Assembly: GCF_001194135.2 (NCBI RefSeq)
Contig: NC_068986.1
Coordinates: 30,736,451-30,800,450, forward strand
Length of the DNA stretch: 64,000 bases
Direction of reading: 5' to 3'
Origin: Octopus bimaculoides
Lineage: Eukaryota
A program made the position numbers and the translations under genes. The notes below the pieces were generated by a model that made no database searches, was not told the origin of the DNA, and saw only the letters and a list, made by a program, of their open reading frames with translations. The first letter of the stretch is position 1. The number at the start of each line of letters is the position of its first letter. Positions 1,944 to 31,855 of this stretch are shown piece by piece.

Positions 1944-2343
1944 TCGTTGCCAGTGCCACTGGACTGGCTGCTATGCAGGACACGAAACTTGGCTTGTGAA
2001 GACCTGTTGGGGCAAGCAAAATCGTGACGGCACCTGTGCCCAGCGTCGCCTTCCTGGCACGTGCAAAGACATTTGAGCGAGATCGTTGCCAGTGCCGCTG
2101 GACTGGCTCCTGTGCAGGTGGCACGTAAAATACACCATTTTGAGCATTGCCAGTACCGTCTGACTGGCCTTCATGCTGGTGGCACGTAAAAGCACCCACT
2201 ACACTCTCGGAGTGGTTGGCGTTAGGAAGGGCATCCAGCTGTAGAAACTCTGCCAAATCAGATTGGAGCCTGGTGTAGCCATCTGGTTCACCAGTCCTCA
2301 GTCAAATCGTCCAACCCATGCTAGCATGGAAAGCAGACGTTAA
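1944..2343 (+). mobile_element. (GAT)n-tailed retroposon/SINE (family A)
   Basis: Core agtggttggcgttaggaagggcatccagctgtagaaactctgcc..ccaacccatgctagcatggaaagc.gacgttaaacgatgatgatg, with a repeated 5' unit gagatcgttgccagtgcc. Other copies: 987-1148, 19320-19564, 32690-32890 (-), 34590-34740 (-), 50350-50567, 63750-64000 (-). Confidence 0.85.
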
Positions 2344-5608: not shown

Positions 5609-18610
<13,002 letters not shown>

Positions 18611-23880: not shown

Positions 23881-26800
23881 ATGGTAAGGAATGTAAAATT
23901 ATTCTGTCGCTAAAATCTGCTGTAAAAAATGGTATTTCATTTCTAAATTAAATTTATTTCTCTTTTGGCTTTAACTGGGGGAACTTAGAACGTTATTCTG
24001 TTATATAAACTTTAGTTTTAATCTTGTGAAATCGTTTAAATTGTGAAATTTATTCCCATCGTTTTTCAACATGGCGTGATAGAAATCTTTCCTAAATGTA
24101 ATCATCCTAACCACGTTTCTCTTTTAATAATTATTATCTTTTTTGTCTCTCACACGATTTCTAATTAGTAAATATGATGGTTCTCCAAAGTCATGAATAT
24201 TTGTTTAAAATCGATGTTTAAAAAAAGATATCCTTTATATGTGAAAATCCTATTTTAAAACCTTCAGCTCTATATCATCATCCACGTGTTATCAACTTTT
24301 CACCCACCACACTCGCTTAACAATCAAGTGAAAGGCTTTTTTTTTTTAAAGTCATATAAAGTTGTTGCTTAATTGTATATTCTAAATTTTTTAATGGCAA
24401 ACCAAAAAAAATTATCTTTATGAATTTAAGCATCGCCTCTCGGTCTGCATTTGTAATTTATCGAGAGTATTTTGGAACAAATGAAATGAGTTTTATTGAT
24501 AATTTCTTGGGGATGGGGTGGGGCTATACGTGCATCTTTTTAGGTGGTTAAATTTTTATTTACAGCTGAAAATCCTGAAAATGTGTAGATTCTTGAAAAA
24601 TATATAAAAAAAAAAAACAGCCGATTATGTGGCATGCTTCGGTAAAAATATATTCAAACGACTCCCTTCTGAACCCTTTCCCTCATCTATGAGGATCCAA
24701 ATCTGCCGACACTAATTAACTAGTTCTTAAGTTCGGATGCGTGGTTAGGGCAGCGGACTCGTGGTCATAGGATCGCGGTTTCGATTCCCAGACCGGACGT
24801 TGTGAGTGTTTATTGAGTGAAAACACCTAAAGCTCCGACGGAATGGCGGCGAACCCTGCTGTACTCTTTCATCACAACTTTCTCTCTTACTTCCTGTTTT
24901 CTGTTGTGCCTGTAATTCAAAGGATCAGCCTTGTCACACTGTGTCAGGCTGAATATCCCCAAGAACTACGTTAAGGGTACACGTGTCTGTGAAGTGCTCA
25001 GCCACTTGCACGTTAATTTCATGAGCAGGCTGTTCCGTTGATCGGATCAACTGGAACCCTCGATGTCGGAGTGTCAACAACAAATTCGGATGCATCCTAG
25101 AACGTAAATAATTCACGCATCCAGGATTAAAAAAACCAGTTACGATCTAAGATCAGAAGTGATGAAATTATAGTGTAAAAGGTTAATACGAAATGCTTTT
25201 ATCCTGAAAGACCGAGCCCTCGTCAGAAAAATGTTATTAATTATGGATTCTAATTTTTAAGAATACTGCATTGCTTGCTATATATATGTTTGAAAATATA
25301 AATCACACGTGCATCGTTTTTTTTTTTAATTCTATAGGTGTTCAATCGGAAATTCGTGGAGGTGGGTCGTGTGGCCTACATCGTTAAAGGTGTAGATTCT
25401 GGGAAATTGTGCGTCATTATCGACGTTATTGACCAAAACAGAGTAAGTTAAAACTTTTTCTGGAGGTACACTCAATGTTTTTAAAATACCAGGTTGTAAT
25501 GTTCTTTTTGTAGTCTGAAAATTGGTTTTCCTGCAGTTTCAAAATTATTGAACATGATGTTAAAATACGGAAGTGGTCTGATTGATAGAGATGACAATTT
25601 TCATTACTGATATCATTAGTTTTGAAACTGAAGGCTACAAAATATAGCAAATTATCTGATAGTTTAATATAGTTTATCGATATATTAGCGCTAACACTCT
25701 ATCAAAGATAATGTTTTGACAGTGTCGTGTTTTATACAGTAATTTATATATACTGGTTTGTTTCCTATTTTCATTTAAGAAACCATGACATTTTGTAAAT
25801 ATGAAATCGTGAACTGAGTTAAACATAGCTGAAAGGATGAATGTGCAAAATGCGTTTGATTTATTCTTTTCAATTAGTAAACTGGAATACAGTTTATGCA
25901 AGATATTAATATCTAGTGAAAAACTTTCCTTATCAACTTATGAGAGTGGAGTGGTTTGTATATGGACACATACAGATATGTGCATAAACATATGTATACC
26001 CCAATAATTGCATAGTGTGGTCCAGATGGACTATATGTAATTTGAACCTTTCCCCCCATGTTTTATTTATTTTTTTACGGAATCCCACGTTTTAGGCTAT
26101 GGAGATTCCGATTCTGAAAGAAATTTTTCAAAATTTTTTTTTTTCAGAATCGGAATCTCCATAGCCTAAAACGTGGGATTCCGTTAAAAAAATTAATAAA
26201 TAAGGGGGGGGAAAGGTTCAGATTACATATAGTCCATCTCTACCGCATAGTGTTATAAAGAAATAAAAATTTACATTGGTTGGGAGTGATGTTGAGATTT
26301 GAGAAACTAGGGGCTGGATTTCACAGAGACAACACAGACCTTTGAATATTTTGTGTATATCATCCTTAATATTTGTCAAGTTTAAGTACCATCCTAATAT
26401 ATGCTTGGCATCTTAGGTATCTGTCTTCCATTATATCCTTGAGTTAAATATATTGTGAATGAGATTTGATGGAGAAAGAAAATCTATCAGACTTGTATGT
26501 TCCTGTGTTTTTATATGTCCTTTGACTTAGTGGCTTATCAAAAAATGATTGATAAAATACCAGACTGCAATAAGTACTGGGGTTGATGTGATTGACTAGA
26601 ACTCTTGAAGGTGGTGTCCCAGTATAACTGCAGTCTAAGAATTGAAGCTAGTAAAACATATAAAAAGAAAACTTTTTTTTAAAAATTTTCTATCTAACCA
26701 TGTTTCATAATTATAGGCTTTGATTGATGGACCATGCAGTGGTGTCTTAAGAAAAGCTATCAATTTCAATAGTGTACATCTGACAAGATTTGTCATCAAG

Positions 26801-29800
26801 ATCAGGCACTCTGCAAGAACCATTGAAGTGAAAAGAGCTTGGGATGCTGCTGACATAACTGGTAAATGGTCTCTGACGAAATGGGCTCAAAAGATTATGG
26901 CAAGAGAAAAGGTTTGTGTTTTCTTTTTTATATTGTGAATTCATTGCATTCAGAACAGATAAACAAGAATTGTTCTCTGGTGTTCCTTTCTTGGGAACCT
27001 TTAAATTTGAGTGGGTTAGCTATATAGAGCTAGAAGTGACCAAGAAATGAGTTGGTGTTAAAAAGATCAATCCACAGGATTCAATCCTTCTGCATGTATG
27101 TTCAAAATGTTATTTGGCTGAAATGTAATTTCATGTAATCTAAGTCTTCAAAGTTTCAAAATTATTGAACATGATGTTAAAAATACGGAAGTGGTCTGAT
27201 TGATAAGGAAGACAATTTTCTTTACTGATATCATTAATTTTGACACTGAAGACTAGAAATATCTGATAAGTAATTTTAATGGTATAATAATTGGCACAAG
27301 CAATGGGAGAAATGTCAAAAAGATTTTGCATCTTAGGTATTGATGATTATAAAAAATATTTTAAAGATAAATAGTGGGGATATCTGTAAGGAAGAAATTT
27401 TTTCATGAAACATTTCTAGTCTAATAATCGCTATCAGAAACGTATAATTTGATGGGGTGTTTCATGTCATTTAGTGAATTAATATGTAACTTTTACATTT
27501 ACTGACTAAATTTCACAGTAATTTAAACCAATTTTGGTTACAATTCTGCAAAGTGTTTATAAAGGTGGTTTTCATTAAAATAATAGATTTTTACACAAGT
27601 AATCAGTAAATCTAGTGTCAGACATTGAAATTTCATTTTTGGCCTATAACTCCCACCCTTTGTTAGCTTCCAGATATTTAGAAAAGAATGGAATAAGAGA
27701 CAAAGCTACATGGTTATGAAACGTATGTTGTTAGCTACACCTGCATCAATTATACACAAACACAAACCCAATTAGAACGTGATGAGAAATGGAAGTGCCG
27801 TCTGAATTTATAAGAGGACAAACCTTCATCTCTGAGTGTCCAATTTGGTGTATACAGAAGGAAATTTTCCTACCTATATATGTCCAGTAGGGGGGGGGGG
27901 ATTACGCGCTATTATATCTTAGAATTGTGTCAAGACCATTATCAGTTTTTCCTTTCTGGTAGGAAGCTAAATATAAGGGGGAAAGGTAAGATGGTAGTGA
28001 TGGGGTTCCAGAGCAAAATCAACAAATAGATGATATAGATTGCAGGTTAATAAGGGTGAGAGGGGAGAGTACAAAAGTGAGGTGTGGCTTGAAGGAAAAT
28101 ATCTGGATGGCAAATATTATGAGCAAGGCTTACGAACAGTGTAGAGGATGAGGAATTATGTTAGGGATGAAGTTGAAATGAGATGCAATCACTATGCTGT
28201 AATTGGTGGTTAGCATTTACTTGCATGACTTCACAGTTGCTTGGAGGATATTTGGTCAGTTCTTAAAGGCTTATTTAATGTTAATTGTGCTCTCTGCATT
28301 TATGTGTGTAGCAGATAAATTTTGTTAGAACATGATGAGACCTGGAAGTGCCGTCTGAACTCTCAGGAAGACGCTTTCAAATCTGAGTCTATATGGCATC
28401 TTTGGTTAATAGCTTGAAGAGGATTAAATGAAAACTACTTTTAGTGTTTTGGTGGTTTAAAAAAAAAAATGTTAATTTTTATAGCTATAACAACAAAAAT
28501 ATAACTAAATATTGCACAGATTTGTAGCTGTTTGAGATACTCATTATGAAGATGGTTTTATTAGTCCCCTCTTTGTTGTAGTTCTTGACTTTGGTTGGTA
28601 CCAATCTGTTCAGCTTTGATATTGAAATGTTAGATTAGCTGAGACATGATGCTCCAGTAATATCTGCTGCACATTGTAAAGCCTGGGTAAAATTTCTGAC
28701 AGTCCAGCACATGCAAGTTGCTGATGGTTAAACAATAATTAATGAAGGAAAAGGACAATAGCACTCATTGCTTATAATATGTATGGATTAGCCATTAAAT
28801 TATATTATGGTAAAAACCTACAAATAATTTTGTTTACATTGTTATATGGCTTGACTATGATTTCCTGTAATTTAAAAGTGTCTTCAATGTTTCAAAATTA
28901 TTGAACATGATGTTAAAAATACGGAAGTGGTCTGATTGATAGAGAAGACAATTTTCTTTACTGATATCATTAATTTTGACACTGAAGACTAGAAATATCT
29001 GATAAGTAATTTTAGGGGTATAATAATTGGCACAAATCACCATCAGAAAGGTATAATTTGGTGGGTGTTTCATGTCATTTAGCGAATTAATATGTAATTT
29101 TTACATTTACTGATTAAATTTCACAGTAATTTAAACCAATTTTAAGAAATTAGTTATAATTTTGGAAAGTGTTAACAAAGATCATTAAAATATATCTTTA
29201 CTCAAGTAACTAGTGAGTCTAGAGTTTTCTCCCTTGTGCAGCGATTTAAATCTAGTGTCGGGCATGTATTTTTGGTTTATCAACATATAATCTCAACCCT
29301 TCAAGATATTTAGAAAGGAAGCTACATGGTTACAAAACAATCTGTGGTCACTTAACCACGCCTACATCTGTTACACACAAACCCAATTAGAGCGTGATGA
29401 GAAATGGAAGTGCCGTCTGAATTCATAAGAAGACAAACCTTCATCTCTGAGTATCTAATTTGGTGTATACAGAGAAAAAATTGTCCTACCTATATATGTC
29501 GGGTGGGGTAGATGGTACCTAGCTATTTTAGAATAGTGTGTCAAGACCATTATCCAAGTTGTGTTTTTTTTTTCTTTCTGATAGGTAGTTAACTATCAGG
29601 GGAAAGGTAAGGTGGTAGTGATGGGGATTCCAGAGCAAAATCAACAAATAGGTGATATGGATTGCAGATCAGGAGTAGGGTGTGGCTAATATGTGGGGAA
29701 TGAAGGGTGAAGGAAAATATCTGGGTGGCAAAAATAATGAGCAAGGCATACGAACAATGTAGAGGATGAGAAATTACATTAGAGATGAAGTTGAAATGAG

Positions 29801-31855
29801 ATGCAATTACTATGCTGTAATTGGTAGTTAGCATTTACTTGCATGACTTCACAGTTGCTTGAAAGATATTTGGTCAGTTCTTAAAGGCTATTTAATATTA
29901 ATTGTGCTCCCTGCATTTATGTGTGTAGCATAAATAAATTTCGTTAGAACATGATGAGACATGGAAGTGCCGTCTGAACTCTCAGGAAGACGCTTTCAAA
30001 TCTGAGTCTATACGGTATCTTTGGTTAATAGTTTGAAGAGGATAGAATGAAAGCAATACTCTTAGCAATTTGGTGTGTTTTGTTTTTATTTTTATAGCTA
30101 TGACTTGATTACTGTTGTTGACAGCAAAAATGTAACTAAGTAATATTGCACAGATTTGTAAATGTTTGATGTACTCATTATGAAGATAGTTTTGTCTCTT
30201 CCTTGTAGTTCTTGACTTTGGCTGGTACCAATCTGTTCAGCTTTGATATTGAAATATGTTAAATTGAGACATCAAATTCCAGTAATATCTGGTACACATT
30301 GTTGGGTAAAACTTTGCATTGGCAATGAAATTATGGATCCTGTTATTCTGCTAGAAACTAGATTACTTTTGTCTATATGGTATGTTTAACAAAAAAAGAT
30401 TTAAAAAGCCAGTATGTACATTTACCTCATAAATGAAATAATGTTGCTGGTGTTTCTACAGTATCATTTTTACAATTTTCACCACTTCCTAGTTAAATCT
30501 TCATAAACGTTCAAATTTTAATTTGGACATTTTCAGTGTTGGAAAGGACAATGTTCTTGGTTCTTCCCTTGTACCAGTTTGTATTTCCTTCATTTCTAAT
30601 TAATACTTCAATACTCTTGCACCATAAGTATTACATTCCATCCTTTCTTGATCTCCATTGCTTCATAACTACTATCAAAGCTTTCCTTATAGTAATTTAG
30701 TGTTAAACTTTAGAACATGAATGTCTATAATTTTGCACCAAATGTTTACAGAGAGCTGCTGACACATGTAGTGAAATAGAAGTGGTTCTGTTAAAAATAT
30801 TTTGAATATTTGTTAATGTGATTTAAAACTAATTAGAACATGATGAAACTTGGAAGTGCCGTCTGAACCAATGTGAAGACAATCTTCAAACCTGAGTAAT
30901 CTTATTAGTGAAGTCATATAACATTTGAAATATCTTTAATGGAGAGTGAAATACTGATAGTCTTGAAATTACAGGTTTTGAAAATCTGGCTCCTTTATAT
31001 GGATGCTGTCTTGAAATTGTGCATTTCCCAGAAATGATCCTCAATGATGGCAACCAGCATTTGGATAGGCTTTTTGAAAATCATGTTGCTGTAACATTGG
31101 TTTTTATCCCTCTCTTTCTCTATAAACAGTTATTGCTAGGATGCATTTAATCTTGTATCTTTCAAATTAGCCAGTTTTTTTTCATTTTACTTTAACCCTT
31201 TCATTACTATATTTATTTTGAGATGCTCTGGGCTTCTTTCAATTATTTTAAATATAACAAAGAATTTAGTAAAATAACTTAGTTATTATTAAGGTAGTGT
31301 TAGGAACATAAATTGTGACTGAGGTTTGGTGGAAGATTTTAATTCTAAATTTATGAAAGCAAGACACTTGTACTACAGAGCCATAGCTAGTTTCAGCCTG
31401 GTTGGTAACGAAAGGGTTAATCATTAGTTATATATGATGCATGGTTATTAAGTCATTTAGAAATCTGGTAACTTCCATATGAAGAAGTGAAATCTAGGGT
31501 CATGTCCTTTTCTTTCTCTTTTGTAGCGAGCAAAGATGACAGATTTTGACCGATTCAAATTGATGCGGGCTAAGCAAGCGGTAAGATAATTATTTTATAC
31601 ACTTCTTTCTTTAGTCTTGGCTACGGGCCAAATGTTAGTGCTTCAAATTTCTCATGTTTCACTGTTTTGTTTCTTAGAATAAATACTATGTATTTTTATA
31701 TTTGTCAAATTTATTCCATTTAATTAATCGAAAAACACTTCTTTTTTCAGAGAAATAGAATTGTTTCTCAAGAATTTAAAAAGCTTAAAAAGAAGCAGAA
31801 GGCTGATAGAAAGCTCAAACTCAAATCTAAGCCCAAAACAGTTGTAAAGCAATAA
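23881..31855 (+). CDS. RPL14: 60S ribosomal protein L14 (eL14), 5 exons, 153 aa
   Basis: Exons 23881-23883 (ATG only, then GTAAGG), 25338-25442, 26717-26911, 31527-31580, 31751-31855, all phase 0 GT-AG. Protein [73 protein letters not shown].. is the eL14 signature. Confidence 0.97.
24735..25080 (+). mobile_element. tRNA-derived SINE in RPL14 intron 1
   Basis: tgcgtggttagggcagcggactc (A box), ggtttcgattccc (B box), then a GC-richer body. It is not a complete tRNA cloverleaf. Confidence 0.65.
25549..25615 (+). ncRNA. U49-like variant box C/D snoRNA, copy 1 (RPL14 intron 2)
   Basis: C-like ATGATGT 25554-60, guide ATACGGAAGTGGT, D' CTGA 25578-81, AGATGAC, D CTGA 25607-10. It has U49 architecture but lacks CC in the guide. 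Confidence 0.65.
26019..26245. mobile_element. Fold-back MITE in RPL14 intron 2
   Basis: ~95-bp near-perfect arms (26024-26116 / 26143-26239), flanked by the direct repeat CATAGTGT (26011-18, 26246-53). Confidence 0.82.
27166..27233 (+). ncRNA. U49-like variant box C/D snoRNA, copy 2 (RPL14 intron 3)
   Basis: ATGATGT 27171-77, ATACGGAAGTGGT, D' 27196-99, GGAAGAC, D 27225-28. Confidence 0.62.
27774..27840 (+). ncRNA. SNORD49: Box C/D snoRNA U49/SNORD49-like, copy 1
   Basis: Box C GTGATGA 27779-85, guide TGGAAGTGCCGT, D' CTGA 27802-05, C'-like AGAGGAC, D CTGA 27832-35. The guide pairs with 28S GUCGGCUCUUCC, with the +5 G opposite the C of CGG[C]UC. Confidence 0.85.
28327..28391 (+). ncRNA. 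SNORD49: Box C/D snoRNA U49/SNORD49-like, copy 2
   Basis: C ATGATGA 28332-38, guide TGGAAGTGCCGT, D' 28355-58, GGAAGAC, D 28383-86, terminal stem TAGA/TCTA. Confidence 0.87.
28902..28969 (+). ncRNA. U49-like variant box C/D snoRNA, copy 3 (RPL14 intron 3)
   Basis: ATGATGT 28907-13, ATACGGAAGTGGT, D' 28932-35, AGAAGAC, D 28961-64. Confidence 0.62.
29389..29455 (+). ncRNA. SNORD49: Box C/D snoRNA U49/SNORD49-like, copy 3
   Basis: C GTGATGA 29394-400, guide TGGAAGTGCCGT, D' 29417-20, AGAAGAC, D 29447-50, terminal stem TTAGA/TCTAA. Confidence 0.87.
29946..30010 (+). ncRNA. SNORD49: Box C/D snoRNA U49/SNORD49-like, copy 4
   Basis: C ATGATGA 29951-57, same guide, D' 29974-77, GGAAGAC, D 30002-05, stem TAGA/TCTA. 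Near-identical to copy 2. Confidence 0.87.
30835..30900 (+). ncRNA. SNORD49: Box C/D snoRNA U49/SNORD49-like, copy 5
   Basis: C ATGATGA 30840-46, same guide, D' 30863-66, TGAAGAC, D 30892-95. It lies outside the tandem duplication and its spacers are diverged while the guide is invariant. Confidence 0.87.

Follow-up and report, generated by a model that had tools for sequence, protein, structure and literature searches.

Five candidate U49/SNORD49 box C/D snoRNAs in one intron of the octopus RPL14 gene

Short repeated sequences within an intron of a ribosomal protein gene raise the question of whether they encode small nucleolar RNAs (snoRNAs) and, if so, which position of ribosomal RNA (rRNA) they would address and how old their residence in that gene is. 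This question is considered here for a stretch of 64,000 nucleotides (nt) from Octopus bimaculoides (contig NC_068986.1, positions 30,736,451 to 30,800,450; referred to below as the window, with positions counted from its first letter), which contains the gene for ribosomal protein L14 (RPL14). A prediction made from the letters of the window had placed five U49/SNORD49 snoRNAs inside a single RPL14 intron, at 27774-30900. The sequence evidence makes it likely that these five units belong to the U49/SNORD49 lineage of box C/D snoRNAs and that, being encoded in an intron, they are transcribed within the RPL14 precursor messenger RNA.

The exon model of the host gene was obtained by tblastn with the human RPL14 sequence, after which the splice sites were read by hand. 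Along its entire length, the spliced product of 153 amino acids shows 100% identity with the O. bimaculoides protein "60S ribosomal protein L14 isoform X2". Because the model corresponds to this known isoform, all five U49-type units can be placed in intron 3, in the sense orientation of the gene (Table 1). The predicted location in one RPL14 intron is borne out by this model, and the predicted coordinates were right to within a few bases.

All five units share one architecture. The 12-mer TGGAAGTGCCGT occurs five times in the window at no more than one mismatch, always on the plus strand (guide positions in Table 1); 0.05 occurrences would be expected by chance, and none of 100 dinucleotide-preserving shuffles reached five. 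In every unit, a perfect C box (GTGATGA or ATGATGA) and a 4-nt spacer precede the 12-mer, a D' box (CTGA) follows it directly, and a second CTGA, the D box, lies 26-27 nt after D'. The C' box, which comes after D' and a spacer that varies, is purine-rich and degenerate (AGAGGA, GGAAGA, AGAAGA or GTGAAGA) and is separated from the D box by a variable element of approximately 13 nt. The unit is closed by a terminal stem of 5-7 base pairs (bp) with a bulge, in which 5' UUAGAAC pairs with 3' GU(n)UCUAA. Three types of unit (A, B and C) can be distinguished by spacers that differ and flanks that cannot be aligned, while they all have the same TTAGAAC, C box, guide, D' box and CTGAGT. The originally described combination of shared boxes C, D', C' and D, an invariant guide and divergent spacers is found in all five units, with the degeneracy of C' as a qualification. 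The internal consensus fold of the octopus units is weak (-5.5 kcal/mol) and without covariation.

Family membership was assessed with the Rfam model RF00277 (SNORD49; gathering score 37 bits), both at threshold and in E-value mode. The original prediction had named the lack of a match to this model as a refutation. At Rfam gathering thresholds this outcome formally occurred, with no match in the whole 64-kb window, while in E-value mode all five units gave sub-threshold matches to SNORD49 (E-values 0.004-0.28 over 3.3 kb). SNORD49 had the best E-value for each unit, and the Plasmodium snoR28 model gave more bits in four of the five, all sub-threshold. All 11 positions of the guide 11-mer GGAAGUGCCGU agree with the consensus of Rfam SNORD49 (AUAGGAAGUGCCGUCAGA), and the Plasmodium snoR28 consensus is identical as well. 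RF00277 consists mostly of vertebrate sequences, and its gathering score is an annotation cut-off and not a biological feature.

In addition, a covariance model (R1) was built from 12 RPL14-intron copies of Babylonia, Liolophura, Lingula and Owenia, with no octopus sequence; three of the 12 pass the Rfam gathering score. R1 recovers the five units of the window (16.1 to 33.4 bits, E 1e-6 to 0.09 over 134 kb; individual scores in Table 1) and, at E-values up to 10, nothing besides them in the 64-kb window. The terminal stem covaries across 32 family members in an alignment fitted to the model: all five pairs are changed on both sides, and 80% of cells are paired versus approximately 30% when the partners are slid. 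Assignment of the five units to the U49/SNORD49 lineage is supported by these results, R1 providing homology apart from the guide search. The three Lingula RPL14-intron copies score above the SNORD49 gathering score (37.4-40.1 bits); the octopus copies and all other surveyed protostome copies fall below it and would therefore be missed by standard annotation. Membership in the SNORD65/snR77/snoR77Y family, which guides methylation of a U in 18S rRNA, was rejected, as pairing of the octopus guide with 18S GCGGUAAUUCC contains a G-A mismatch and puts a G-U wobble at +5; the snoR77Y model gives the octopus units 21.3 bits against a gathering score of 52.

The age of the arrangement was examined by comparison with the RPL14 genes, introns included, of other animals. 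O. vulgaris and O. sinensis each have six U49-type units, all in the intron orthologous to intron 3 of O. bimaculoides. The gastropod Babylonia has four (two introns, two each), as do the chiton Liolophura (one in intron 1, one in intron 2 and two in intron 3, with another in an opposite-strand neighbouring gene) and Crassostrea (three in intron 3 and one in intron 4; boxes AUGAAGA and CAGA). Lingula has three units and Owenia, Drosophila teissieri and Tribolium have two each, in every case one per intron. With speed filters off, no U49-type units were found in RPL14 of Priapulus, Saccoglossus or the fish Betta. The claim that Drosophila U49 is hosted in RpL14 introns was borne out at the sequence level in D. 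teissieri, whose two units occupy two introns, and RpL14 is among the snoRNA host genes of D. melanogaster (2026 preprint, PMC13228274). The further claim of an ancient protostome host finds support in the copies from one brachiopod, one annelid, two insects and four classes of molluscs. On this distribution, U49 has been inherited together with RPL14, probably since the ancestor of the protostomes; the simplest reading would be that the association is older than the split between spiralians and ecdysozoans, the priapulid representing loss or non-detection. Deuterostomes were sampled at two loci (Saccoglossus and one fish).

Copy number in Octopus is only moderately raised. The norm is 2-4 copies per RPL14 gene, and the 5-6 copies of Octopus compare with 2-4 in other spiralians; the part of the predicted "unusual copy expansion" that stands is the extreme stacking in a single intron. 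Two or three units in one intron are also seen in other molluscs, but the single Octopus intron holds 5-6 U49 units together with copies of a related unit, X, described below, of which O. bimaculoides has two there and O. vulgaris and O. sinensis have four. The octopus set is real and fairly ordinary, consisting of new members of a known snoRNA lineage in an inherited host gene. A literature search found no papers naming both SNORD49 and RPL14, and the survey provides cephalopod, further spiralian and insect cases of one snoRNA kept in the same host gene across distant phyla.

Some neighbouring features were recorded during this survey. The further unit of Liolophura (RPL14 locus 1972-2053, minus strand; R1 37.5 bits) is of U49 type and lies in a divergently transcribed FAD-oxidase gene. 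A gene with FAD_binding_4 and FAD-oxidase_C domains stands head-to-head with RPL14 in the gastropod, the chiton, the oyster, Lingula, Owenia, Priapulus and Saccoglossus (first ~2.9 kb of each locus). Such synteny was rejected for octopus RPL14, as tblastx found no FAD-oxidase gene in the window, where 1-23800 lies upstream of RPL14. In Owenia, a further RPL14 intron contains, at 6044-6108 of the locus, a box C/D candidate of another kind, which has no relation to U49 (ATGATGA...CTGA; terminal stem of 7 bp).

The proposed mode of action draws on the established behaviour of box C/D small nucleolar ribonucleoproteins (snoRNPs). Boxes C and D, together with the short terminal stem, would form a kink-turn on which each unit binds the core proteins fibrillarin, Nop56, Nop58 and 15.5K, and the assembled unit would be released from the excised RPL14 intron. 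The 10-nt sequence GGAAGUGCCG adjoining D' would then pair with 28S rRNA 5'-CGGCUCUUCC-3', and fibrillarin would add a 2'-O-methyl group to the C opposite guide nucleotide 5, which corresponds to Cm4456 of human 28S rRNA.

The 28S string concerned, CGAUGUCGGCUCUUCCUAUCAUUG (a 24-mer; CGATGTCGGCTCTTCCTATCATTG), is present without change in at least 120 eukaryotic ribosomal DNA (rDNA) contigs. Against the 28S rRNA of other eukaryotes, the octopus guide forms a 10-nt duplex in which CGGC at positions 2-5 and CUUCC at positions 7-11 are paired on either side of a U-U mismatch at position 6; this puts the C of UCGGC*UC at +5. By our count along human 28S rRNA, we take this C to be C4456, 42 nt 5' of the A-loop Um/Gm (4498/4499). 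Cm4456 (Cm4426) is given as the site of SNORD49A and SNORD49B (PMC9941101). The U-U mismatch had been predicted to match that of human SNORD49A, and because the Rfam SNORD49 consensus has the identical 11-mer, the mismatch is family-wide and not an octopus oddity. In other species the guide is longer, reaching (UU)GAUAGGAA, and pairs with UUCCUAUC(AA). The bases at the extension positions vary among the octopus copies (AAAU, ACCU, ACAU, ACUU), and the GAUA complementarity is lost. The guides of the SNORD49 consensus, Lingula, chiton and fly clearly favour the C4456 site (-21.5 to -26.0 kcal/mol). With the extension lost and with near-equal energies at competing sites (given below), the octopus target therefore rests on homology more than on energetics. 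The predicted placement of +5 on the Cm4456 equivalent stands, the octopus target being less secure than that of other species, and it is probable that the units direct a single 28S methylation at this position.

Several observations weigh against the interpretation of the five units as a working U49 set. None of the five reaches the SNORD49 gathering score (18.9 to 25.9 bits versus 37). The units lie 630 to ~3700 nt from the 3' splice site, several in one intron. The octopus duplex is short (4 bp, U-U, 5 bp), with -15.7 kcal/mol at the C4456 site, and the octopus guide energies at 28S GCGGCACAUCU (-15.3 to -17.5) and at the 18S 530-loop GCGGUAAUUCC (-15.0 to -18.8) show no separation from it. 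In addition, A1/A2 and B1/B2 are recent duplicates whose flanks, too, are 92-95% identical. Three alternatives were also weighed.

The alternative that survives best concerns processing. One snoRNA per intron is typical of vertebrates, and Octopus departs from this pattern. Given the distances and the shared intron, release of the inner units would need internal cleavage or unannotated splicing, or would give snoRNA-capped long RNAs (sno-lncRNAs). When human SNORD49B and SNORD49A come to share one intron through skipping of the exon between them, a sno-lncRNA accumulates and the single snoRNAs are hindered (PMC4233243). It is conceivable, though unlikely, that snoRNPs form in the octopus but that the main products are sno-lncRNAs spanning between units, instead of or alongside single snoRNAs; this would fit the presence of seven snoRNA-type units (X1, A1, B1, X2, A2, B2 and C) in one 4.6-kb intron with no annotated exon between them. 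However, Crassostrea has three units and Liolophura and Babylonia two in one RPL14 intron, where conserved boxes and guide suggest single-unit release in molluscs, and intron-internal clusters processed to single snoRNAs have been reported for Drosophila and plants. If octopus RPL14 did yield sno-lncRNAs, a ribosomal protein gene would be a source of such RNAs outside mammals.

The second alternative concerns the target. The octopus guide may have drifted to another or an additional target, either the U of the 18S 530-loop (the SNORD65/snR77 site) or the C in 28S GGCGGC*ACAUCU, leaving the C4456 equivalent unmodified or otherwise guided. The roughly equal energies at the three sites and the loss of the GAUA extension that fixes the 28S site elsewhere point in this direction, as does guide U6, which is mismatched at the C4456 site and pairs with A at both alternatives. 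We nonetheless consider such drift improbable, since the guide 11-mer is that of SNORD49 families with an established target, the 18S pairing has the G-A mismatch and G-U wobble noted above, the 28S alternative is mismatched at position 8, and the C at neither alternative site is known to be methylated in human or yeast.

The copies themselves have accumulated by two routes. Segments of intron 3 are repeated at spacings of 1608-1736 nt with 90-97% identity, flanks included, and because the flanks of A1/A2 and of B1/B2 are alike too, the similarity within these pairs tells nothing about selection. Types A, B and C are all present in RPL14 of O. vulgaris and O. sinensis; on this evidence, they are old paralogues, older than the split between the O. 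bimaculoides and O. vulgaris lineages. Judged from these comparisons, the copy number is the sum of the old paralogues A, B and C and a recent intronic tandem duplication of ~1.6 kb. Among the six copies of O. vulgaris, and likewise of O. sinensis, three are hybrids that are nearly identical to one another; they combine an A-type 5' flank with a B-type body and follow one another at intervals of ~1.2 kb. Amplification of this kind is unlike the duplication in O. bimaculoides; the units were therefore amplified independently in the two lineages, and the array turns over quickly. The third alternative, that most or all copies are snoRNA pseudogenes from segmental duplication with a functional U49 elsewhere in the genome, is very improbable: the recent A1/A2 and B1/B2 pairs, the degenerate C' boxes and X, which shows that copies in RPL14 can lose the guide, speak for it, but types A, B and C predate the O. 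bimaculoides/O. vulgaris split, the C box, guide, D', D box and stem are intact in 17 of 17 copies whose flanks are unalignable, and RPL14 retains such copies across phyla.

Across the 17 copies of the three Octopus species, six elements do not vary: UUAGAAC, C box, guide, D' box, CUGAGU and a UUCA motif. The UUCA lies 4-7 nt upstream of box D, with neighbours that vary (in the window at 27825-27828, 28376-28379, 29440-29443, 29995-29998 and 30885-30888). It can pair with UGGA of the D' guide of its own unit and also with UGAA(G) in 28S rRNA, both 16 nt 3' of the target C and within CUUUGAAGGCC. D-box guides as the basis of a shared target were rejected, as types B and C pair over 8-9 bp with 28S CUUUGAAGGCC and type A over only 6 bp.

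The original prediction was essentially right about the five U49 units but overlooked a paralogue, X, of which the O. bimaculoides gene carries three copies (Table 1). X is kept in O. vulgaris and O. sinensis, each of which has five copies of it. X and B-type U49 have in common GAACAUGAUG, GGAAGUG, UCUGA, AGGAAGAC and CUGA, while the guide of X is GGAAGUGGU compared to GGAAGUGCCGU in U49 and its external stem is 12-19 bp long. With this altered guide, the CCG pairing beside the target C is lost. Intron 2 of Lingula and chiton RPL14 carries a normal U49 copy; judged by its position, X0 therefore seems to descend from such a copy and to have undergone a change of guide. X as a whole looks like an orphan paralogue derived from U49. 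No conserved rRNA site for its D' guide was found among the 120 eukaryotic rDNA contigs scanned, and matches of its D guide to 28S GAGGGAAAGUUG and 5.8S UAAUGUGAAUUG were rejected as weak, G-U-rich or off-register. If sno-lncRNAs were formed, X could cap their ends, or it could be an orphan directed at a new target. Together, the stacked units, the independent Octopus amplifications and the guide-altered X provide a small natural system for the processing of multi-snoRNA introns, copy turnover and guide change.

Table 1. Coordinates of the RPL14 exons, snoRNA-type units and duplicated segment in the O. bimaculoides window, with the hybrid units of two other Octopus species (scores in bits).
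Feature	Position	Strand	Details
RPL14 coding exon 1 (ATG only)	23881..23883	+	GTAAGG after it; spliced-product identity
RPL14 exon 2	25338..25442	+	tblastn and splice reading
X0, U49-derived box C/D-like unit, intron 2	25530..25634	+	C box 25554-25560, D' 25578-25581, D 25607-25610; long external stem
RPL14 exon 3	26717..26911	+	tblastn and splice reading
RPL14 intron 3 (4.6 kb)	26912..31526	+	GT...AG ends; five U49-type and two X units inside
Tandem duplication of ~1.6-kb segment	27144..30380	+	order [X1-A1-B1][X2-A2-B2]-C, unit C outside; repeat families D1, D3-D10
X1, intron 3	27144..27253	+	C box 27171-27177, D' 27196-27199, D 27225-27228
U49-type unit A1	27772..27843	+	C box 27779-27785, guide 27790-27801, D' 27802-27805, D 27832-27835; SNORD49 25.8, R1 18.1
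U49-type unit B1	28325..28393	+	C box 28332-28338, guide 28343-28354, D' 28355-28358, D 28383-28386; SNORD49 20.0, R1 33.1 (E 1.2e-6)
X2, intron 3	28880..28989	+	C box 28907-28913, D' 28932-28935, D 28961-28964
U49-type unit A2	29387..29458	+	C box 29394-29400, guide 29405-29416, D' 29417-29420, D 29447-29450; SNORD49 25.9, R1 16.1
U49-type unit B2	29944..30012	+	C box 29951-29957, guide 29962-29973, D' 29974-29977, D 30002-30005; SNORD49 18.9, R1 33.4 (E 1e-6)
U49-type unit C	30833..30904	+	C box 30840-30846, guide 30851-30862, D' 30863-30866, D 30892-30895; SNORD49 24.1, snoR28 29.1, R1 23.6
RPL14 exon 4	31527..31580	+	tblastn and splice reading
RPL14 exon 5, stop codon included	31751..31855	+	tblastn and splice reading
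Hybrid units, O. vulgaris	RPL14 locus 8322-10788		
Hybrid units, O. sinensis	RPL14 locus 8198-10630		

The introns of octopus RPL14 hold additional features. Downstream of both A units there are candidate micro-exons, 22-23 nt in length (27963-27985 and 29585-29606), with a strong acceptor (12 of 14 pyrimidines and TAG) and a strong donor (AAG|GTAAG), and are also present in O. vulgaris (RPL14 locus ~12001-12022) and O. sinensis. Their inclusion would change the reading frame, which makes poison exons one possibility; they could also serve to subdivide the intron. Intron 2 contains a near-perfect hairpin of ~120 nt (26069-26192) with sub-threshold matches on both strands to many unrelated microRNA models, for example MIR2619 (67 bits, with a gathering score of 113); its appearance is that of an inverted repeat of the miniature inverted-repeat transposable element type, not a conserved microRNA. 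In intron 1, the sequence of a transfer RNA (tRNA)-like stretch at 24740-24800 (GGTTTCGATTCCC) suggests a tRNA-derived fragment of a short interspersed nuclear element. No tRNA genes were found in the window between 23000 and 33000, and ARAGORN calls none at 24740-24800 either.

Among known systems, Drosophila U49 resembles the octopus units in host gene and in the core of the D' guide (D. teissieri copy a GAUAGGAAGUGCC, copy b GAUAGGAAUUGCCGG). The fly has two copies, one per intron, and a longer guide (GAUAGGAA...), whereas all five octopus copies share a single intron and their guide is shorter. The Drosophila copies are presumably FlyBase snoRNA:U49:66Da and 66Db. Other spiralian RPL14 units (Lingula, Liolophura, Babylonia, Crassostrea and Owenia) have the same host, orientation, box layout and multi-copy state as those of the octopus; their guide, UUGAUAGGAAUUGCCG, has U instead of G at position 7, which results in two central mismatches, with 9 extra bp, and their terminal stems of 5-7 bp are cleaner.

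Human SNORD49A and SNORD49B (RF00277) share the identical guide 11-mer GGAAGUGCCGU, including the U opposite U4457, and their target, Cm4456 (Cm4426), is established in human. They differ in having CAGA as D' and a guide that extends to AUAGGAAG, and the octopus units reach only 19-26 bits on their model. As originally predicted, the human host is not RPL14; it is C17orf76-AS1, which we take to be SNHG29. This host carries SNORD49B, SNORD49A and SNORD65 and is described as also encoding a putative protein (PMC4233243). The human sno-lncRNA containing SNORD49B and SNORD49A has at least two U49 units in one spliced-out intron, as in the octopus, the likeness being a structural analogy only.

SNORD65, yeast snR77 and plant snoR77Y have nearly the same guide as the octopus units, the snoR77Y consensus having GGAAUUACCGU; their 18S Um site is presumably human U627. 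For full complementarity to 18S GCGGUAAUUCC, guide positions 5 and 7 would have to be A and U, respectively; in the octopus guide, both are G. The insect RPL14 copies score about equally on the snoR77Y and SNORD49 models. In protostomes other than the octopus, the RPL14 guide GAUAGGAAUUGCCG is one substitution away both from SNORD49 (GGAAGUGCCG) and from SNORD65/snR77/snoR77Y (GGAAUUACCG), and it can pair with 18S GCGGUAAUUCC through G-U wobbles. This intermediate guide, together with the human host that SNORD49 and SNORD65 share, hints at common ancestry of the two families or at dual targeting.

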